The notes under the pieces were generated by a model. The model was not told where the DNA came from and ran no database searches. It worked only from the letters and a program-made list of their open reading frames with translations. A stretch of 63,016 nucleotides of DNA, the filler included, from Reticulomyxa filosa (lineage: Eukaryota; Protista; Foraminifera): NCBI GenBank assembly GCA_000512085.1. It is 18 parts of 18 records of this genome, joined end to end, with 100 filler letters (N's around TTAATTAATTAA, not from the genome) between each part and the next. Parts side by side here need not be neighbours in the genome. Positions count along the whole stretch, not along the records: positions 1 to 7,352 come from ASPP01028263.1; 17 more parts are not named here. One strand, 5' to 3'. The translations under genes were made by a program, and so were the position numbers. Shown here piece after piece: positions 1 through 16,837 of this stretch (within the stretch, counting starts at the first letter, position 1; every line of letters begins with the position of its first letter).

Positions 1-1
1 C

Positions 2-943
2 TCCAATGACATTCACACATGTACCATTCTCAGTCAAAACTGCAGTACCAGAGCCCAATGGAATAGGCAAAGTATGTTCAAACATCGTCCATTTGTCTTC
101 TTCAATAGAATATTTGTGCACTTTGTTTCCCCATTTTCCGAAATCCATTCCGCCAAAAAATAGTACATTATTGTCATTAACACGTACATATGCATAATCA
201 TTAAGATTTGCAATACTGTCACAAACAGACAAGCGATGGCCTTGAAATGTATTTCTGTCTTCATCATATTCAATTAACAATCCTGTCTTTTTACAAAATA
301 ACAGCATTTCATTCTTTTTTTGATTACTGTTTTCACGTCTGGAAATAAAACAAGGGTATTGAACATGATCGTCAACTAGAAAAGTACTACGATTAATATA
401 TTCAAAAGTATTCAAATTGAATACTGAAATATCTTTTGGAGGATGGGCAATAAACAATAAATGATTTTTACTTCCTCCAATTAACGACCTTGCTCCAGTG
501 TAGTCGTTTTGTCCTCTTTCCATTTGAATTGGATTGTTGCGTTCATCAACTAATGGTTTCCATTCATTGAAAGCCCTATTTGCAATGACATTCCAATTCC
601 CATCATCATCCCAAACACTCTTGTAATACATTCGCAATATATTTTTGTCTCTATTACTCTTGCCACCAAAAGATAACAAAGTGATATCATTTAATATTTT
701 ATCGTTGTTATTGCGCACATCTGCCACCACACAGCGCACATCTGTCACACAGTGCACATCCATTTTGGTATAGGAACAAATTGATTTGTACTGCTTTCTA
801 ATCATATTGTATGAAAAGCATTCGCTTTCTGGGTCGCTTCCACAAAGCAGCAATTCTTTTTTGTACACCACGCATTGACTACGACGTAGTGAAACTGGCA
901 AAGAAGGCAATGTTTTAAATCTAGTGACAGTTTGCTTTGCCAT
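2..943 (-). CDS. Kelch-like beta-propeller protein, 3' end runs off the window (absent from the ORF track)
   Basis: Manual translation from ATG 943 gives 314 open codons: MAKQTVTRFKTLPSLPVSLRRSQCVVYKKELLLCGS...ITLLSFGG...RSLIGGSKNHLLF...VLFFGG...VHKYSIEEDKWTMFEHTLPIPL. Repeated hydrophobic-GG...Y...W...LP motifs are kelch-like. Confidence 0.8.
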   Translation of the reverse strand, partial: MAKQTVTRFKTLPSLPVSLRRSQCVVYKKELLLCGSDPESECFSYNMIRKQYKSICSYTKMDVHCVTDVRCVVADVRNNNDKILNDITLLSFGGKSNRDKNILRMYYKSVWDDDGNWNVIANRAFNEWKPLVDERNNPIQMERGQNDYTGARSLIGGSKNHLLFIAHPPKDISVFNLNTFEYINRSTFLVDDHVQYPCFISRRENSNQKKNEMLLFCKKTGLLIEYDEDRNTFQGHRLSVCDSIANLNDYAYVRVNDNNVLFFGGMDFGKWGNKVHKYSIEEDKWTMFEHTLPIPLGSGTAVLTENGTCVNVIG

Positions 944-1688
944 AGTTGTTGGTAACGTCAAAACCTTTGGCAATTTTTTAAGTAAATGAAAACAAAAAAA
1001 AAAACAAACGGTTTTTGGAAAAACAGAGCCAAAGGGAATCAACAGTCATTGTAGTTTATTATCTGTGATTATTTTTTAATTGAAGCAATAATTGAACAAT
1101 TACAAGAAATTTATCAAACAAAACAGATCATCAACATTGAAGAATCAATCCTTTCACATTTAAAAACAGATATATGAGATGATTTATTGAATAATTGTGC
1201 ATGCAAACAACAATTTATTTTTTTTTCCAAATCCAATCTTTTGGAAAATAAAAATATTTTCTGGAAAATTCGTTGTATTTCCATCTTTCAGGGACGACTA
1301 ATGTTTATATATTCGTACATATTCGAGAGAGTGAGCCTATTTTACATTGTATTTGTAATGTATTACAAATACAAATTTCTGTCGCAAGAATGCAATATCT
1401 TCCAACATCCAGACCGTTTTTAGAACGTTTTTAAGGAGGTTGGATTTATTGTCATTGTATTAATGAGTTACTTCTTCATTATAGCTGAACACAAAATATT
1501 TTTTTCTACAATAAAGAGGACATCATTTTAGTTGAATTTGCTATATTTTTTCTCTTTTTTAAATAGTTAAAATAAAGTGTAATTTCGTAAATCACGAGTA
1601 AGGAAATTCGCCTAAACTACAAAAAACAAACTAGTTTTAATAAAGTTCAAAGGGGAGGAGAAACGTTTTTGATTTCCCTTGTGCAGAC

Positions 1689-4600
1689 ATGACTAAAGCA
1701 ACTGACGCAACAAAACAAAAATTGAAAGACTATTACAAGTCACAAGACGAGCTGATTCCATTATTTGATGACCACCAACAATCAATTGCCAATTGTTATA
1801 TTCGATTGGTTCTTTTGACTCAGCAACAGTTTCAAAAAAGAAAAGACAAAATAACAAATAAAAGCAATGAAGAAAGTGAAAAATGGCCGAACACGTTGGA
1901 CTATTCATTATTTTATGGTGGTGAACAAGAGACAACAGAATTAGAAGATATTTGGGGAATAAAAACAGAAACAGGTAGATTAAAAATACGTTATATTAGT
2001 ATCCATGGAGAAGCAGGGACTGGAAAAAGTGTATTGACACAAAGGATTGCATGGCTATGGATAAAAAAACAAATGTGGCGTGATCATTTTCAATTGTTGT
2101 TGCATATTCCTTTAAGAAAGATTGCCAATATTTTTGACAACACTTTAGATGAAAAGGATAATGTTATTGAAATGCAATGGTCAAAAATAATGGGTGAATT
2201 AAATATTCCGCGATGGAACACAAATGATACAAAATATATCGTACACGCAAAGGATGGATTGTTGTTAGTGTTGGATGGATTTGATGAAATTGCAAATGAA
2301 TTGAATTCAAAACCAGGTTTGAAACATTGGTTGAAACGTTGCACTAAAAACACAAACTATTCGATTATTATCACAAGTCGTCCCAATTCAATATGTTCGT
2401 ACTTGGATGTTGGATAGGATTGAAACATGGACAAGCTATCATTCTTTGCGAAATGCAAGAAAAACATTGGAATGGATTAACAAAAAATATCTACGCAAAT
2501 GTATTGCAATTCCATCTCAATGGTCTCGAATTCATTCATTTGGATTTTTACAAGGACAGGAATCTATGAGTCCATCACACCCAACTAATCCAGTGTATTT
2601 CCCTCATTTGACATTTCAAGAATAGTTTGCTGCTTATTGTTTGGAGCATTGTTTATATGAACCAATTGAATCAAATGAAGTATGTCATGTTTTGATTAAT
2701 GAGCAACTCACTCCCAAATATTCAGTGAGCAGACACAGTTGGGACAATAGCACTAAGGATGAGTGAAACACAAATGGATGATATTTTCAAAGTATTATGG
2801 AAGGGATTCGATAATCGAAATAAATTTGTCCATGAAACATGTGCCAAATTGATTGCAAAAATATTGTGCAATATGAACGAGAGGCAATTGAGTAATACTT
2901 TTGAATGTTTGATGAACAAATTTGATAAAACAAAGACTAGTATACATTTGACAAAATCCAACAAAAAGATAACGTATCATTATTTAAAAGATACAATGTC
3001 TCAATTTGATAACTCAAGACGACAATTCTTACTAAGGGGGCATTCAGGAGTCCCTGAACCTGTGCACGCATATGAAAATAAAGACAGTGTTAAAGATGAA
3101 TGCCTGCATTGGTCATCTGCAAGATTACTTGCAATAATCTCAATGAAATTGAATACAAATCAATTTTGCATACTTTTTCAACATTTGATAAACGGATTGC
3201 AAGATAAACAAAAAATTGTTCGTCTGCGTTATGTGTTATTGCTTGAAAAAATTGTAATGACGTCAGGTCAAGAACAATTAAATGTTACATTTAAACGTTT
3301 AACCAATGAACTAATTTGCAATAAGAACAAAAGTAGAAATTGGCTATATAAAAAATTATATACAGAAACTTTAGTCCGATTGAATGATATACACTCAGAT
3401 ACAGCTTTCGAGTATTTAATGAAGGGTTTGAAACATAAGAGATCACGTGTTCGCAAATTGTATGTTGTTGCCTTATTAACAATAATACCAATAAAATGGA
3501 ATCAAACACAATTGGACAATCTCGTTGCATATTTGATACAGAATGAACACAAATACAAGAATAAAAATGTTCGCTATTCATGTGCAGAATCACTTGGGAG
3601 GATATCAACGAGATTGAATGAAAAACAATTGAGTGCTGTTTGTGACTATTTAAAGGAAAGATTAAATGATAAAAATGAAGATATATTGGTTCGTATGTCG
3701 TGTGCAGAATCCCTGGGAAGAATAGCAATGAAATTGGATTCACAACAATTTAAAAACATTGTTGAATGTCTGATGAATGGAATAAATGATGACAAAGAAA
3801 ACCCATTTGTGCAGAAATATTGCACATATTCACTGGAAAGAGTCTTACCAAAAATGAATGAAAGGGAAAGGAAAGCGTTGATGGAATACAAAAAAAAACA
3901 AGTGAATTGTTTGATTAAAGGACTCAAAGATGAAGACAAAAATAGTTGTTATTATTCTGTAACATCGCTTGCAAATTTCTTGACAAGATTAAATAAAAGA
4001 CAATTGAACAATCGTTTCTATTTTAAAAAAATAGCATTGCACATAGATGATTTGCTTCACTGTTTTAATAAAGGAATCGAGCACAAAGATTATCATATCC
4101 GACATTCATGTGAAATAATATTTAAAATAATATTACCAGAACTCAATGAAATACAATTGACTAATTTGCTTGCTTGGTTAAAAAATGGATTCAATAAAGC
4201 TTATGAAATTAGATATTTATGTGAAAACCTTCTTACAGCAATATCATCAAAATCGAATAAACAACACATTTGCAACATGTTCGAATCTTTGATAAATGGA
4301 TTCAATAACAAAGATGGTAGCATTTATCAAGCATGTATGGGTGGACTTCAAACAATAACTTCGAAATTAAATGAAACACAATTGGATAGTATGCTTGATT
4401 ATTTAAAAAAGGGATTCCATAGTGGAATTAATAAGGCTGGACATTCATGCATACAAATACTCGAAATTATATCACCGAGATTGATTAAGCGACAAGTTAA
4501 GATGCATTCGAATTTTTAATAAATGGACTTAATGATGGAGATCTTGGCATTTTCGGATTATGTGCAGATGGACTTCAAAAGATAGCACCAAAATTGGATG

Positions 4601-6663
4601 GACAACAATTGAGCAAATTGATTCAATGTTTACAAAAAAGACTCAATGATATAGATAATATTAAATATTCGTGTTTATATATCGAGACAATGGCGTCCAA
4701 TTTGCATGACCAACAACTGAACGACACAGTCAAATGTTTAAAATATGGGATCGATAGTAAAGATAATGCTGTTCAATCTTCCTTTGGACATATACTTCAA
4801 GAAATATTCAAAAAATTGGATAAACAACATCTGAACACGTCAGACCATTCTATCTATTCATGGGTAACTGTATTTTCAATCATTGCAATGAGATTAAATG
4901 ACGAGCAATTTTGTTCTTTGCTAAATGATCTTTTACAAAGATTGGCAAATAAAAACGCAAATTCAGTGTTGTCAGCCATTTCAGAAGATATATGGAGACG
5001 TGCTACTATTATCACCTTAAAAGAGAACAAACCAAAAAAAATGAGAAAAAACAACATTGAAATAGAATCGCTGGCATTTGGTTTGTCGCAATGCAATCCT
5101 TGTATTTACTTTGATTATAATGATACAAACAGCAATCTTGTCAACTCTGATGCTTTCGATGAATTAAAACGCTGTTATGATAGACAAGCCAAAAAGTGGG
5201 GTCTTCCAACTCAACAAAAATGGGATGGTTATGATACTCCAGAAATTAAATTGAAATTACAGCGTTCAAACAATAACGTACAAAAAGATCGCTATAGCGC
5301 CATTCATGAAGCAGCAAAATTAGGTGATATACCACAGTTGAAGTTAGCTCTAAAATGTCGTATTGACATCAATGAATTCAATGAACATGGACAAACTCCA
5401 TTGCATGTGGCAATACACAATAAACAATGGGATGCTGCTCGTTATTGCATTGAAAAATATGCATGGATAGATGTCAGAGAGAGTGCATTAAATGGGGACA
5501 CCTCGCAAACTCCTTTTGAACATGTCATTGAACTGATGAAGAAAGCAGATTATGAAAAAGATAAAAAAAAATATTTAGAAATGTGTAAATTCATATTGAA
5601 AAAACGGACAATATATCCAATGAACCAAATTGAATATGCGATTGATTATGTCAAAGATAAATTAGTTAATGAAGACGGTGTCCGTAAATTCATTGATGAC
5701 GAAAGTTATCAGACATTGTTACAAGAAGGTGCAACTTTTCTATTGGGTGTAAATTTTGGACAATTGCAACAACTGTTAACCAATAACAGTCAATTTTATT
5801 GGGCAACTCGCCAAAATATTCTATCCATCAAAGCTGAAAATTCAGACAGAAAAGAATTTGATGAGGGGTGGTATGTAAAAGAATTTCTGGAGTATCGAAT
5901 ATTTTTGTTGTTTGAAATATGTGTCCGATTGAAACGAGAAGGAAGAAGTTTCATTGGATTACCAAAAGATACAACGTTTGAACAAGCATATGAAAAAGGA
6001 ATAAAAGAATTGCAAGTGCAATTGACAACTTATTGGGATTACATCACAGCAATGAAAGTTCATTTCGTATGTCCAACATTGCTTGGTAATTGGAGTTGGA
6101 ATGTGGTAGATCGTTTGGTGAATTTAAAACCAAATAATAAGTGTTGTGAAATGAGTTTAGTGGTTGGCCATAAAGATCATTCCATTTATTTGAGTTTGTG
6201 TAAAACATCGACTCATATTTTGATTCGGATTGACAATCGATGGATGGAAACTATTCCATCTGATACTCATCCAAGTAAAATTGTATCGACAAATGACAAG
6301 AATTGCACATTAATCCAGCCTTATTTGGTCGCATACTTTTTATGTAATAGCACAAATGTTGATCAACATAAGGAATGGTTGCAAAATTATATCAAATGTG
6401 CATTTCGATGGAGAAAGCGTAAAAGTAAGAAAAGTATGGCACATTTGTATTGTCAATCATCGTGTAATATTCCTCCTCGTGAGGGGAATTTGTTATCAAT
6501 TGTAAAGAATTGGCCGTATTTTTCTGTTCAAACTGATGCAAATAACTGCTATTTGCGAAATCACAATGTTGGATATCGAATTCGTTTGGGTAATGACGTT
6601 TATTATTGGATTTATAATCAAGAAGGTAAGAGTTTTGTGTTCAATAGAGATGTTCCAAAATAA
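1689..6663 (+). pseudogene. NLR-like gene: NACHT NTPase - HEAT/ARM repeats - ankyrin repeats - C-terminal globular domain; disrupted
   Basis: Walker A GEAGTGKS (2007-2030), Walker B LLLVLDGFDE, sensor IIITSRP, winged-helix motif YFPHLTFQE*FAA with TAG at 2623-2625. HEAT-like repeats (VRYSCAESLGRI, VRMSCAESLGRI) in 2759-4519. Frameshift at about 4498-4500 into the 4594-6663 ORF, which has ankyrin motifs (AIHEAAKLG, GQTPLHVAI). Apparent internal deletions near 2410 and 2727. Confidence 0.8.
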
Positions 6664-7352
6664 GATGAATGGACAAAAGGAAACCAAAGAAGTCGGCAAA
6701 AGGGTCCTGTCAAATCAAAAAACACAAAAACAGTGGCAAGGCAAGGCCTTACGACATACTAGCAAATCTCCAAGAGTACCATGGAATACTTTTCCACTTG
6801 CCTTCCAGACAACTTTTTCTTTTTTGTTTGTTTATTTAGTCATTTTCGCTTCTAAAGGTATTAATTTTGCAAATACAATAGAATGCGAAAGAAATTTGAC
6901 ACCTAAAATGGTATCTTATATAGATAATTGATTTTCTTCACAAAGAAACAATATCCAGACCTAATTTTTTTTAGAATTTAAATGTTTTATTGTTTTTGAA
7001 ATTTTTGAGAAAAGTTTACAATCGTGCATGTATCATAACCACGAAATTTCCAACTTTTTTAAAGCATTTTCAAAAAATGTTCCATCATAAATATTTTGCA
7101 TAAAAATAACAAGTTTTCGCAATGAAAACGAATAATAAAAATTTGTTGAAAAATGAATTAAAAGCAAATAAATTTTAAAGATGTTATAATTTAAACGAAG
7201 ATTTAAATTTTTCAAATTAGGAAAGATAATTATTACAAGAATCAAAAATAGGAGAATACACAAGAATTTTTTTGATCATGCAAAAACTAATCCTTTTCAA
7301 AAAAAGTATTTTTATTGATTTCTCATTCTCCTTGTTAACAAAAAATTCACTC

Positions 7353-7452: not shown

Positions 7453-9604
7453 TAAACTTCGAACTCAGTAAAACAGGCTTGTATATGTGCGAATTTATCC
7501 AACTGGATCTTTAATTCATTCGGATTATCAGTGTTATTCCATATGCTATTAGCCAACATAGTAACTTGATCAGTTAAATTTTGGGATAATGAGTTGCTGC
7601 TTACTGTATCTGTCAGGTGTACTCGTAATTCATCCGCCTCATGAAACTTATCAATAGTTTGTTTGTAAAGCATAACATCTTCTTTGCTAATATTATGTGC
7701 AGAGATCATACATTTATTAAACGAACATTTACTTTCTTCACATTTTTCGTTCCACTCTCGAGTTAAATGAGTTACGCATTCTTTGTACTGCACTCCAATT
7801 AAGTTATTCCTTAACACTAAGTTTAATTCTACGAGTTCGTCCAGTTTGATTTTAGCAATTTGGAAATTATTATTTTTAAAAGCAGATATAATGTTGGATT
7901 TGTGTTGTTGCACTTGAAGATTTACCGCTTTTTCAGATTTGTTTGTGAGAAAGAGTTGAAATACGTCCTGAGGATTTTTTATAAAATGTTTGATATCACA
8001 AAATTTTTCTAACAATTCGGTAGGATCGTCTTGCAATATGTCCGGTGCGAGTACCTCTTTCTTGGTCTTTTTGTGAATATCTTTTAAAATGAATTGGTAT
8101 CCTTGATCCTCATCGTCTTTGACTGACTCGTATGCATTTTGTGCTTTCTTAGGGATAGATTTCTTGTCACGTTCATGGAATTTGTTGAATATATAAGAAA
8201 AGGCACTGGTATAATCTTCAATGGATGGAATAATGCTTATCAAAGTGCGAGCTAATTCTTTGACGCAACTCAGGCGATAGCCTAAAGCTTCCGCGCTGAT
8301 CACTACAACAGGTTTGACACGCTTGCAATGTTGGAGTGCTCGTATGATGCCAATGCCATTGGCAACATCGACTTCGGGGCCATTGGTATCTTCAAATCCA
8401 GGAGTATCACAAAGTACAACTGTTTTCATTTCTGTAGTCACGCCCATTTTTTTTAGATTAATAGGAACCGCGGTGATGTATTGGGTTGCCGACTCTGCAT
8501 CTGCACTGGTCACAATATCAGATAAAGCTTTGCTTTTGATTTTAGTAGGTACAATGTGAGATTGTCCATCTACTATTTCTTCTTTCAATTCCGATCCTGC
8601 AAGGAAGTGAATTAATGTTGATTTCCCGGTGCCAGTGCCTCCAAGAAATAATATCACGTCTTTGTCTTTTATTGCTTTTGCTGCTTCATCTGCTTTTTTT
8701 GTCAACTCTAACATTTTTGCAATGTCAAAATATTTTTTTTCTGTTGTATTTGAGCCTTCTTCTTTTCCTTCTTCTTCTTCTTCTTCTTTTTTTTTTTTTT
8801 GTTCGTTATCTATAATCTCGTCACTATTTTGAGAGGAAAACTTTCTTTCCTCTTGTTTTGTTTCTTCCATCTCATTGTCAATCACTTTTAATGACAGCCA
8901 ACATTTGTCCATATCATTGTATCGATCTTCCCACACTCTTTTTAAATCATCACCACTCCGAATCTCAGTTTTTTCCTCGTCATCTTGAAAAAAGCCATTC
9001 TCATTCGGTACCCCAAACTGTCCTTTTAAATCGCCAAAGTGCTCATCCCAATCTTCTCCGTCCAATTCATTACGAAAATTTGGAGTGTCTGATCGTTTTG
9101 GGCACCATGTCACTTTTTCAGCATTATTTATCATTGCTAGGCATCTCTATTTTTTTTAAAACGATATATACACTTTTGAATTTTTTTCTTTTTTGATTAC
9201 AAAAATTAACTATTTCAACTAACCAATTTTAACACACAAGATTTTTTCTTTTTATTTCCATTCAGTCTACTCATAAAGTCACGCAAATCGGCCCCATTGT
9301 CGACTTGCTTATAATCGCTTTTTACAAAAAGAAATGATGACTCATTTGACAATCCCAATTTTTTTTTAACATCATCTACAAAATTTTTCCAAATAGTCTC
9401 TAGCACATTGTTTGGACAATCATTATTTAAATTCGTTGACACAAAACGCGCTTTTAAATTTCCATACGCTTCCACGACAATCGACTTGCCCTTTTTGTTT
9501 TATTTGCGCACTCCAAGAGTAGCTCTAGTTTTTTTTTTGCGCTTCTCTTGTTTCAAAAAGTAAAAACAAATTGAAAAATAAACCGTCTTTTGCGTGCTTG
9601 CCAT
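7453..9604 (-). CDS. TRAFAC-class P-loop GTPase (AIG1/GIMAP/Era-like) with two N-terminal PB1/ubiquitin-like modules and a helical C-terminal region; 3' truncated
   Basis: Exons 9604-9584, 9490-9224 and 9146-7453 are joined in frame by GT-AG introns 9583-9491 and 9223-9147. G1 ILFLGGTGTGKST, G3 LCDTPGFEDT, G4-like IFNK. Confidence 0.8.
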
Positions 9605-11076: not shown

Positions 11077-13249
11077 ATAAAACCTTTTTCGGATACTCAT
11101 TTTTTATCCATCTTTTTTCATCAAGTCGGTTCGATTTTGTCTAATGCGTGACTTTATGTGTGTGTTCTTTTTCTTTTTTTCTTTTTTCTATCCCTCTCTC
11201 CTTTTCACTTTGCTTGGTCGCAAAACGATGCTTTGACTTTGACCAATTGCTCAAAGACAAAAAAAAAAAAAAAAAAAAAGCCCTTTCTTCCCGTCTCAAT
11301 GTTTTCATTGAGTAGATAGTTGATCATTGCAAACAATAACAACGTCTCCATCATCAAATGTTTTTTTAATCTTTGGGACAAAAAAAGGCTCATTTTTATT
11401 ATGGGAAAATAAGACTATGCGAACTCAATGAGGTGCAGTGCATTAAAAAAAAAAAAAACGTATACTATCGACTACAAAAAAAATCCCACTAAAATAATCC
11501 TTGAAACAGTTAACACTTTTTGCTGGTCGCCCTTTAAACACTGCCGCAAATTTCGAAAAGTGAAAGTAACGCTGATAATACAATTGTCTTGGAAAGTATG
11601 TCATTGAGAGGCTTAATATCCAAACACAACAATTTTTGTAAAATGATTTGGTGTCGTGCTTCTAATTTAATCGTATTCAGCATGTACATATCAACAAACT
11701 TGAATTATAAAGAAAAAAAAAATAAGATACTTTTTCTTTTTTTCTATATTTGTTATCTCGTGACTGGAATAACTTTTATATCTTATTTTGTAACTTCCTC
11801 ACTTTTCGACTAAAGAAAAACAAAAGATCTTTGCAAGTAATTGAAGAGTTGTGAGTAAAATTTTTTATGCTGACTAATGATTATTTAGAATATTTTATTT
11901 GATACTAAATGAAATTTAATATTTAACATTCGAACCCAATGATGAATAATTATTTAGACCTCTTCTTTTGGCTGTTTCAATCACAAAGCAAAAACGATAA
12001 ATAAACAATAAATAATAAAAACCTAAAATAACTTGAGTTTAACTTTCGTGATGAACTTAAGTCATTTTTTCAACTTTTTTGATTTTTCTCTTAGGTCACA
12101 AGATATAAAAAAAGCTTTTAACTTCTTTTTAAGATCAATGAAGAATTAATGAAACATTGAGGCGACATTATAAATCACAAGACAAGTTAGCTCCTTTATT
12201 TGGTTATTCTGGACAATCTATCAATCATTGTTACACTCGACTGGCTCTTTTGAAGAGCAAAAAGAAAAAATGATATGTAATGAACAGTAAAATGTTGTTT
12301 CTATTCGAAATTTATTTTGCATTTTTGTTTTTTATGTATTTATTGTGCTGATTCTTATTAATTTATGCTGAGTGTTAGTTTTAGTTATTTTAACTCAAGT
12401 TTTCCTTAGGAACATTAAATTAAACTTTGCCTTGCAAGAGTTACCAATTCATTATAATTCTTAAAGCAAATACAGATGAATGAAAAAAAAAAGAAATTTG
12501 CACTTCTTTATTTTATTCATTTTATCCTTAATGACGATTTTGAGTGGCGCAAGATTTTTATTTTCAATACTTTGTTTGATCCACTTGAGAATCTGTATGT
12601 TTTTTTTGAGTGGATCGATATTGTAATAATCGAAATGCTTTCTTTTGAATGGTATAAAAATACCAGATATATTTGGAATTGTCAGTTGTTTTTGCACACC
12701 TCCTGATAATGTTACCCCGTAAATACGTGAGAATGGAAATTTTCATCACTAAATGTTATCTCTTTTTGTTTTACCAACAAGAATATAATATTTGTTAATA
12801 TTATCAAGTAATGTAGCTTCTGGTCCAAAAGATTTTGACATTCAAGTTATTCATCATTATCATAAAAACTTTTGAAAGATCAACAAAATAAAGCAAATAA
12901 ATATACAGAAGAAATTCGTTATTGTCTCAATTTATATGTGTTATTTGACATATTTACTGTTGTATCAATCAGAAACAAGTCATTCATATTGGCTTGAAAT
13001 TTTTTTTTTATTGAAGTTCTTTTTCACTCTGATTTTGGTTAAAATTTTAAGAAACTCCAATTTTTGGAGTGAATATAACATAATTTTAGCGCAAAAATAA
13101 AACAATTTAGAATTAATCATAAAATTAAAACAATTAGCATTTGATCTTTTCTGCACTTCATTGACACTTTTTTCCCGTATATTGAAGCAAAAATAAATAA
13201 AACTTACAACAATGAAAAAAATTTTCAACTATCAAATTTTTGGAGAAAA

Positions 13250-15509: not shown

Positions 15510-16043
15510 AGGAATCAATAGAAATGAAAGTATTGGATAAACCACTCGCTCAAGGCCATGATAGCAAAGGCAAGTTTTCTACGAGACATGTCTGGCGATG
15601 AAAGACATTGACAAAGTATCCATACAATTATCCGAACTGAGCTAATCGAATTGCGAAGTTGTGGTCGTCCACTACATGGAACCTTTGATGAAATTGAGGA
15701 AGGATCAACAAAGACTCTCGTGGAGTGGAACTAGACGAATGGGATGCCAATGTTATGATCGGGACATTCAAAGGACGTAAGTTCCAATAGAGGAGCATTT
15801 GTGCATTGATCTCAAGTAATCAGATACTACGATATTATTAGATTGGAAAATGGAAGTGATTGGAATATAGATATCAAAGAGTATGTCATCACGGAGTTTG
15901 CCAAAGACGCATGGGTCGGACTCGTGTTTGAATGACTTTTCGGCCAATGCCATGGCCATGGACCAGCACAGTCAAGAACGTTGTTGACTTTAGGACGCGT
16001 CCATATCGAGGATTTTTTCGCGCACGCCAAAGCATCTCATCGA
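15510..16043 (+). pseudogene. Decayed coding sequence, family not recognised
   Basis: Coding-like composition and protein-like stretches (DIIRLENGSDWNIDIKEYVITEFAKDAWVGLVFE) broken by stops and frameshifts. Confidence 0.3.
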
Positions 16044-16260
16044 NNNNNNNNNNNNNNNNNNNNNNNNNNNNNNNNNNNNNNNNNNNNTTAATTAATTAAN
16101 NNNNNNNNNNNNNNNNNNNNNNNNNNNNNNNNNNNNNNNNNNNAAAAAAAAAATAATCAAAATTTTTTTTTTAAAAAAAAATGTTTCAAAATTTTAGTTT
16201 AATGTGTTTTCAACACATTAAAACCAACTTTTTTTTTTTTTAAAAAAAAAAAAATTTAAA

Positions 16261-16837
16261 CTTTGTGTTGGTAGCATCAATAACTCTTCACACGCAAATT
16301 TAGCCAATTCATAATTGTGCTGTTTCAAATCAAAAGCATCAACTCTTTCCACGCGTACATGTCGTTGCAATACAAGGACAAGTATTCGTTCAGTTTGTGG
16401 ATGGCCGCCTTTTCATTGCGTTGAGAAATCAAAAGTGCGATTTTGCGCTTCAAGGCGCCCGTGTTGTTGTTGTCTTCTTTCAGTATCAGGTTATATATGT
16501 GCTCTGTTTTATTCCATTCCTCTTGCTTCTCCAATATCATCCCTCGAAGCAATTTTATTCGCTTACTGTCCTCGCCGAAACTTTGACTCAATTCATTCAG
16601 ACATTCCGTCGCCACTGATGTTTTGTGGCATTGCAGAGCACTTATCACCACTCTCTCCAATAGTCGCCATCTTTTGTTCGCTGGTACGTTCTTGCTGTCC
16701 AATAATATTTTACCGTAATGCGTCACCTCCTTTGGTTTATCCAAATTATTATCTTCTAAAAATTGCAAATATCGCCACGACTTTTTTGGATTTTTTTCGG
16801 CTTCTTTGCGAAGTTGCTCTAATTGCTCAGAAGACAT
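16261..16837 (-). CDS. EMC2: ER membrane protein complex subunit 2 (TPR), 3' truncated
   Basis: WRLLERVVISALQC...F GEDSKRIKLLRGMILE...ALKRKIA...LNEYL...AWKEL. After a 1-nt shift at about 16330 it continues LKQHNYELAKFACEELLML, matching EMC2/TTC35. Confidence 0.88.

Follow-up and report, generated by a model that had tools for sequence, protein, structure and literature searches.

What is encoded at the 3' end of an interrupted NLR-like gene in the foraminiferan Reticulomyxa filosa, where the repeat arrays give way to a domain that neither Pfam nor NCBIfam recognises? The window analysed here is the whole stretch of 63,016 nucleotides, filler included, joined from 18 parts of assembly GCA_000512085.1, and the gene lies in its first part (positions 1 to 7,352, ASPP01028263.1). 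A first-pass annotation had proposed that positions 5280-6663 belong to an NLR-like protein with ankyrin repeats and a putative C-terminal His-Asp-Gln-Cys protease effector, possibly shared with intracellular bacteria. We consider it probable that this region corresponds to the C-terminal output module of a NACHT-HEAT-ankyrin STAND protein, consisting of two to three ankyrin repeats and an AnkH/AnkD-like domain of likely bacterial origin. The window holds a decayed copy of it.

Gene architecture and decay of the window copy

One long gene on the plus strand runs from an ATG at 1689 to a stop codon at 6661-6663 and is interrupted, passing through frames 3, 2, 1, 2, and 1 in turn. The gene is in frame 3 up to 2414, garbled between 2402 and 2727, in frame 2 from 2729 to 4516, and in frame 1 from 4501 to 6660, and these pieces were searched separately rather than as one joined sequence. 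Along the gene, the order is NACHT, HEAT repeats, ankyrin repeats (all three with Pfam matches), and the AnkH/AnkD-like domain, in agreement with the first-pass annotation, which had placed NACHT, HEAT, and ankyrin upstream of the putative effector. The ORFs on the minus strand are short and lack support, and neither tandem repeats nor Rfam families were found.

The frame-3 segment (1689-2408, plus strand, as are all gene segments below) encodes an N-terminal stretch of about 105 residues, whose fold is unassigned, together with the first three quarters of the NACHT NTPase. The Pfam NACHT profile (PF05729) matches the frame-3 piece 1644-2414 with an E-value of 6.6e-16 over profile positions 1-132 of 167. 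Walker A (GEAGTGKS, 2007-2030) is found at residue 107 of the ORF starting with the ATG at 1689, in line with the earlier estimate of about 100 residues ahead of it, and Walker B is located at 2259-2288; the first 104 residues of the ORF have no Pfam match. A remnant of the post-NACHT helical or winged-helix region (2402-2727) was recognised by tblastn with the paralogues P0021 and P0025 and the ORFs of the paralogue L001. It is followed in frame 2 by a HEAT repeat array (2729-4498), with Pfam HEAT, HEAT_2, HEAT_EZ, and ARM_TBCD_2nd matches within 2729-4516. The overlapping frames reveal a one-base change from frame 2 to frame 1 within a HEAT repeat (4496-4501), beyond which the repeat motif carries on from the frame-2 piece into more HEAT-like repeats and a linker (4501-5259). 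Two to three ankyrin repeats (5260-5479), matched by Ank_2, Ank_3, Ank_4, and Ank at residues 254-326 of the piece 4501-6660, precede the C-terminal domain of 348 residues (5617-6660), in which a helical part is followed by a predicted alpha/beta cysteine-protease-like core.

The window copy is a pseudogene, having a truncated NACHT, one stop codon, and four frame changes. The NACHT match ends at about profile position 132, leaving the NTPase module incomplete, and about 130-150 codons are absent at around 2405, after the ITSRPNSICSYLD segment, relative to the paralogues P0021 and L001 (tblastn). Three frame changes lie near 2410, 2470, and 2728, the fourth being the one-base change at about 4499 within the HEAT repeat, and a TAG occupies 2623-2625 where the paralogues carry Trp. 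Sequencing error could account for small frame slips within short runs of bases, but it cannot account for the TAG-for-Trp substitution and the 130-150 codon deletion. The last 720 codons are still open and include all the conserved candidate catalytic positions. Decay or assembly error seems to be common in the R. filosa family because L001 is likewise broken, into four ORFs. The frame changes, the TAG, and the internal deletion are absent from the first-pass annotation.

The gene model P0023 matches the window exactly, exon by exon (tblastn 99.8-100% on three segments). As published, it begins downstream of NACHT, crosses the slip at about 4499 via a predicted 86-nt intron (4496-4581), and switches at 6447 from frame 1 into a non-homologous ORF of frame 2, with the result that Gln305 and Cys311 of the domain are omitted. 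An intron was considered as the cause of the frame change at 4499 and rejected: the two frames overlap by only about 16 nt, and the "intron" of P0023 deletes a recognisable HEAT repeat. Frame 1 is the true continuation because it is also found in the homologues checked on bacterial contigs, where spliceosomal introns are impossible. The splicing-out of the candidate catalytic motif in the published model, and perhaps in others of the family, may help to explain why the domain has been overlooked.

Conserved residues and predicted fold of the C-terminal domain

The four residues named in the first-pass annotation were located at 6178-6180 (His), 6232-6234 (Asp), 6529-6531 (Gln), and 6547-6549 (Cys). 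An exhaustive profile search with the domain identified 150 proteins at E up to 1e-3, and the 77 proteins covering at least 200 profile positions, 55 of them distant homologues with 17-33% identity, were aligned, giving an alignment of 78 sequences. The conserved residues of the domain are E131 (nucleotide 6007), H188 (6178), R204 (6226), D206 (6232), N207 (6235), and H218 (6268), followed by Y258 (6388), Y278 (6448), Q305 (6529), C311 (6547), G319 (6571), and R323 (6583). E131, H188, and N207 are each present in all 55 distant homologues and Y278 in 53; R204, Q305, and C311 are each kept in 52 of the 55, and D206, H218, and R323 in 51. His, Asp, Gln, and Cys thus belong to the conserved core of the domain family. 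Of the 16 paralogues in R. filosa, which have 50-68% identity, most retain all four residues, with a few single losses: Cys is replaced by Ser or Gly in P0007, P0008, and P0014 and His by Tyr in P0014 and P0015, while P0017 has Glu for Asp and P0012 has Glu for Gln.

The consensus motifs of the domain family are GxxGHxxYxxF, RxDNLG, and QxxGNCVxxSHNVG, and the corresponding window motifs are GHKDH, IDNRW, and ANNCYLRNHNVG. The present domain shares the order of His, Asp/Asn, Gln, and Cys with the CE-clan proteases (Ulp1/SENP, Den1, XopD, SseL, NopD; Pfam Peptidase_C48), whose catalytic order of His, Asp/Glu/Asn, Gln (oxyanion), and Cys is represented by H188, D206/N207, Q305, and C311. The CE-clan-like order H...D/N...Q-x5-C, which the first-pass annotation had recognised, thus falls on conserved columns. 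Either Asp206 or the adjacent Asn207, which is invariant, may complete the triad.

Sequence comparisons alone did not place the domain. The C-terminal domain gave no match to Pfam or NCBIfam at permissive thresholds, and none of the 78 aligned copies matches any Pfam family consistently. When two domain profiles were searched against all PDB sequences with hmmsearch, AnkH and AnkD were absent at E up to 10 (best match, E 1.6), and two single members searched against the PDB sequences retrieved designed ankyrin proteins only; the PDB and Pfam profile searches at E up to 10 revealed no sequence-level link to AnkH or Peptidase_C48. A first structural model, built from the paralogues only, was mediocre (pLDDT 71) and had no Foldseek match. 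The AF2 model from the 78-sequence alignment reached a pLDDT of 94.4 and a pTM of 0.93. In this model, His188 opens the strand 188-196, Asp206 ends the next antiparallel strand (200-206) with Asn207 adjacent, and Cys311, after a long loop, is the first residue of the helix 311-324, with Gln305 ahead of it and five residues in between. Judged from these secondary-structure positions, the His, Asp, and Cys residues would be brought close together in space.

We compared the model exhaustively with known structures and found Legionella AnkH (6mca) as the best match, with a score of 14.5 over 241 residues and an r.m.s.d. of 4.3, followed by AnkD (7ew8; 13.9, 221 residues) and LegA15 (7kj6 and 7xql; 13.8-13.9, 218 residues), while the next entries, of various proteins, scored below 6. 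Foldseek ranks the same AnkH/AnkD/LegA15 entries with probabilities of 0.75-0.84 and weak E-values. CE-clan proteases turned up repeatedly among the weaker matches, each of them individually within noise (XopD 5.6, Den1 5.0, SENP7 4.8, NopD 4.5, SENP5 4.4, SseL 3.9, and SENP2 3.4); the structural study of AnkH itself relates the AnkH domain to the CE-clan protease XopD (PMC6712400). According to the model, the domain and the "cysteine protease-like domain plus cap" of AnkH and AnkD/LegA15 are distant structural homologues with a CE-clan-like fold, and the kinship to an AnkH-type module of ankyrin repeats and a cysteine-protease-like domain, anticipated in the first-pass annotation, finds its counterpart in these four best-matching entries. 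In the EspL/ShET2 proteases, the residues follow the order Cys, His, and Asp. An assignment to ShET2/Toxin_15 (protein atlas, score 0.79) was dropped, as this order differs from that of the present domain and structural support was absent.

The comparison with AnkH can be extended to individual residues. The AnkH triad is H243/D258/C324, and the conserved motifs of the AnkH family are rGHa, D/NRg, and GNCSWANV (PMC6712400). The His, Asp, and Cys residues of our model are on secondary-structure elements matching the published description of this triad, and the motifs, as judged by eye from the quoted ones and not from an alignment, resemble GH, DNLG, and GNCVxxSHNVG of the present family. LegA15/AnkD shares the fold with AnkH and has the putative triad H268/N290/C361 (PMC9757750); four residues separate its Gln from the Cys (Q356, C361), compared with five in the present domain. 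In AnkH and AnkD, the ankyrin repeats are directly N-terminal to the domain, as they are in the window (5260-5479, with the domain from 5617) and in the bacterial homologues. However, AnkH and AnkD have about 40 fewer residues between Asp and Cys, and they stand alone at about 450 residues, whereas the present module is part of larger proteins (1400-2000 residues), in which it is joined to NACHT and HEAT repeats. They also come from Legionella pneumophila, whereas the present module is found in a eukaryote genome.

Residues such as His, Asp, Gln, and Cys are common, and with no Pfam or PDB sequence match in favour of a protease, H...D...Q-x5-C might be suspected to be a chance arrangement in an unrelated domain. 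This suspicion is hardly tenable, considering that precisely these columns rank with the most conserved ones of the family and that the predicted fold matches proteins carrying the triad on corresponding elements.

Bacterial relatives and origin of the R. filosa family

The sharing with intracellular bacteria, which had been raised only as a possibility, was borne out by the presence of the same architecture in Rickettsiales (Candidatus Jidaibacter acanthamoeba and Midichloriaceae), a proteobacterial MAG, and a chlamydia-like contig. The named bacterial members are from Jidaibacter (P0070 and P0095), a Midichloriaceae MAG (P0082), and a proteobacterial MAG (P0112). A further member, P0041, is on a TARA contig that we read as chlamydia-like from the adjoining genes for Hc1 and a TLC nucleotide transporter; it belongs to a set of three HEAT-repeat genes arranged in tandem, of which the first runs off the locus and the second also has NACHT and ankyrin repeats. 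In the bacterial homologues, NACHT at about residues 100-270 is followed by HEAT and/or ankyrin repeats and then by the C-terminal domain, which is the order in the window. Other family members pair the domain with ankyrin, TPR, or WD40 repeats. Among 81 small genomes related to the Midichloriaceae MAG, the domain was detected in seven, with 1-4 matches per genome.

All 20 matches in a word search with the C-terminal piece were R. filosa proteins. A quick maximum-likelihood tree groups the 23 rows taken as R. filosa in a single clade (SH-aLRT 100); the name Reticulomyxa is available only for the word-search matches and P0021 and P0025, and P0022, P0024, and P0026 were assigned by identity. The R. 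filosa clade is nested in a 99-supported clade with P0041, P0047, P0032, P0042, and P0061, which in turn is sister to a Rickettsiales-like group (96), and 37 further diverse sequences are outside the 96-supported clade. P0041 and P0032 lie on contigs whose gene content is bacterial. The phylogeny, one of the checks suggested in the first-pass annotation, therefore groups the R. filosa clade with metagenome sequences in a bacterial gene context where this was checked. One old horizontal transfer into the foraminiferan lineage, followed by expansion to dozens of copies, appears the most likely explanation of these sequence relationships. The tree is unrooted and its eukaryote sampling is thin, and it is with this reservation that we would place the transfer in the direction from bacteria to the foraminiferan. 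Tentative indications of further clusters, in haptophytes and rotifers, come from the protein atlas.

Could the contig instead have entered the R. filosa assembly from a bacterial symbiont or contaminant? Among the relatives outside Reticulomyxa, the closest that were checked are bacterial, convincing introns are absent from the gene, and its G+C content (31-35%) is within the range of some Rickettsiales loci (L008, 29%; L006, 37%). However, the nearest contigs examined (L003-L005) have a G+C content of 43-48%, compared with 31-34% in the R. filosa loci, a sign that the composition became adapted to the host. At least 23 divergent domain copies, along with many fragments, are assigned to R. 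filosa, whereas a bacterial genome with the domain gives 1-4 matches. Moreover, ORFs are absent from the 1.6 kb before the gene and the 0.7 kb after it. The 3' flank includes a dispersed non-coding repeat outside the gene (6874-7112, no strand assigned), which is common to another R. filosa contig, where it has a different position relative to the gene (L001 4364-4680 and, inverted, 4919-4823; 79-80% identity, blastn). Contamination is therefore very improbable, and we retain a transferred gene resident in the foraminiferan genome as the preferred interpretation.

Ubiquitin-fold neighbours and candidate activity

At five bacterial loci (L006, L002, L007, and the second copies in G001 and G003), a gene for a ubiquitin-fold protein (PF00240) is directly downstream of the domain gene on the same strand. 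At L007, the domain gene is additionally preceded by a U-box gene, and a weak RickCE-like match follows downstream. In G001 and G003 together, four of the five domain genes have a PF00240 neighbour, and six of the seven PF00240 matches are at these four loci. Three translated neighbours are 300-341 residues long, with a ubiquitin-like domain first and a Gly-rich hydrophobic tail last, and their make-up can be described as Ubl-Ubl-Gly-rich hydrophobic tail, with a membrane-active-looking character. The genes for the Ubl-tail proteins of L006 and L002 are at 11311-12285 and 15705-16607, respectively. No ubiquitin-fold neighbour was present in Jidaibacter, G004, G014, or the chlamydia-like contig. 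The ubiquitin-fold neighbourhood fits a Ubl-directed activity, for which it is the main independent support.

The domain would function as a protease or Ubl hydrolase, and we infer both its substrate and its activation by NACHT. In intact members, such as P0021 of R. filosa or the bacterial P0082 and P0112, ligand-driven oligomerisation of NACHT would unite or unmask the Cys-His-Asp domain, and the unmasked domain would cut a peptide or isopeptide bond, most likely beside a ubiquitin-like fold, with the ankyrin and HEAT repeats holding the target or the ligand.

The conserved Cys might also serve other chemistry on the same AnkH/AnkD fold, such as that of a GTPase like LegA15/AnkD or a YopJ-type acetyltransferase. 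LegA15 has been reported as an atypical GTPase employing the equivalent cysteine, in which C361 activates water and K367, R291, and R408 bind GTP, and the mutation H268A has little effect (PMC9757750). In the present family, however, the His that is dispensable for the LegA15 GTPase is invariant (55/55), the residue after Asn is mostly Leu (DNLG) and not Arg, and no conserved Lys is found six residues past Cys at the position of K367, where the family has SHNVG. We rate the GTPase reading lower because of these three features. In addition, the gene neighbours encode ubiquitin-fold proteins and not GTPase partners, and the Gln with its five-residue spacing from Cys is the oxyanion signature of the CE clan, which argues against non-protease chemistry in general. 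Such an activity is accordingly rather unlikely compared with the protease or Ubl-hydrolase activity.

It could further be asked whether the domain is a silent binding or scaffold module, a pseudo-enzyme in which the conserved residues serve folding or ligand binding. Activity has been demonstrated for no member, and some R. filosa copies have lost Cys or His, with Cys missing in three of the 16 paralogues. For AnkH, protease activity in vitro was absent, and the triad side chains in the crystal deviate from the active configuration (PMC6712400). On the other hand, the AnkH triad mutants lose function during infection (PMC6712400), and the retention of H, N, Q, and C at 17-33% identity, over more than 50 sequences from different phyla, would be unusual for a dead site. 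A pseudo-enzyme is thus quite improbable as a general description of the family, and we continue to favour a catalytic domain.

Like NLR and bNACHT STAND proteins, the present gene has its repeat arrays after a NACHT NTPase that carries Walker A and B. NLRs have an N-terminal effector, whereas only about 105 residues precede Walker A in the present gene and the presumed effector is C-terminal, past the repeats; furthermore, the repeats are HEAT and ankyrin instead of LRR, TPR, or WD40. The bacterial homologue at L002 is in an integrase/AlpA/DUF927 island beside an MmeI-type restriction gene, a context resembling a defence island. In bacterial and fungal gasdermin systems, STAND or repeat-linked proteases activate a neighbouring pro-toxin. 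The present bacterial loci are similar in combining a fusion of a sensor NTPase with a putative protease and an adjacent protein with a membrane-active-looking tail. In gasdermin systems, however, the protease is caspase-like or a subtilase and the neighbour is a gasdermin, whereas the present family would have an AnkH/CE-like fold, as modelled, and a ubiquitin-fold neighbour.

Tentatively, the AnkH/AnkD fold might represent widespread, unannotated Ubl-directed cysteine proteases located C-terminal to NACHT switches, of which the enzymes of protist-associated bacteria would process a co-encoded protein of ubiquitin-like domains and a membrane-active tail. The foraminiferan would have captured the whole gene and expanded it to an NLR-like repertoire whose protease effector follows the repeats. 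This reading, if true, would in turn suggest what AnkH, a core effector of Legionella, does biochemically, which has long been sought.

In summary, the AnkH/AnkD module has a new and unannotated relative in the C-terminal domain, which has a CE-like active-site layout, is attached to NACHT, and occurs in intracellular bacteria as well as in a foraminiferan. Few Legionella effectors are conserved throughout the genus, and AnkH is one of them; the activity of LegA15 is disputed between its protease-like fold and a GTPase. To these proteins, the present analysis adds a large and diverse sister family with invariant His and Asn, near-invariant Asp, Gln, and Cys, and a fusion to NACHT. The pairing with ubiquitin-fold genes in bacteria leads to a concrete hypothesis about the substrate, one that is open to bench tests. 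A rhizarian NLR-like family with a presumed C-terminal effector, apparently bacterial in origin, bears on how eukaryotic STAND immune repertoires have been assembled.

Conserved elements within and around the domain

The sole column invariant across all 78 sequences is Glu131 of the AnkH/AnkD-like domain (window 6007-6009). This residue belongs to the long helix 121-151 and lies outside the triad positions described for AnkH (PMC6712400). Several R. filosa paralogues (P0001, P0002, P0009, P0011, and P0013) carry a further conserved C-terminal extension of ~100-150 aa after the domain (457-606 in P0001 and 477-629 in P0002), for which no family match was found; the window ORF ends ahead of it. 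At the other end of the protein, the ~105 aa ahead of Walker A (window 1689-2000) also gave no family match. Because bacterial homologues likewise have about 100 aa in this region, the N-terminal stretch might possibly constitute a small conserved domain.

Gene models and a dispersed repeat

The published gene model of the window locus, P0023, contains three predicted introns, which bridge one frameshift and send the C-terminus into non-homologous frames (the segments concerned are window 4496-4581, 6448-6508, 6509-6910, and 6975-7100), so that the Gln/Cys motif is lost from this model. The paralogue P0016 likewise changes to frame 2 near window 6341-6375. Other family members in the R. filosa assembly may be similarly mis-modelled. 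A dispersed non-coding repeat with 79-80% identity is common to the window (6874-7112) and another R. filosa contig, L001 (4364-4680 and 4823-4919). Since the L001 copies form an inverted pair, the repeat may be a small transposon remnant.

Settings of the bacterial loci

An integrase/AlpA/DUF927 island harbours the copy in the proteobacterial MAG locus L002 (4962-18694), and a restriction-modification gene of the MmeI type comes after it; this setting is mobile and defence-island-like. The chlamydia-like marine contig L003 (1-14893), which also encodes Hc1, a TLC transporter, and EF-P, bears a tandem of three very large HEAT-repeat genes; the first extends past the locus edge, the middle one has NACHT and ankyrin repeats besides HEAT, and the domain was looked for only in the third (P0041). 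At the metagenomic locus L007, a U-box (E3-like) gene (1499-2533) lies upstream of the NACHT-ANK-domain gene, and the ubiquitin-like gene is followed by another (8196-9482), whose 428-aa product weakly matches a RickCE-like catalytic domain (E 0.004). Together with the domain gene, these three look like a ubiquitin-themed operon.

Ubiquitin-fold neighbours

Directly 3' of the bacterial NACHT-ANK-domain genes, we identified genes for ubiquitin-fold proteins at five loci: L006 (11311-12285), L002 (15705-16607), L007 (7167-8192), and the loci of second copies in two genomes (G003:C9, 212-397; G001:C6, 1735-1980). The three translated proteins, 300-341 aa in length, share the same layout, in which a ubiquitin-like domain is followed by a second beta-rich part and a Gly-rich hydrophobic tail. 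These neighbours may serve the protease-like domain as substrates or as effectors.
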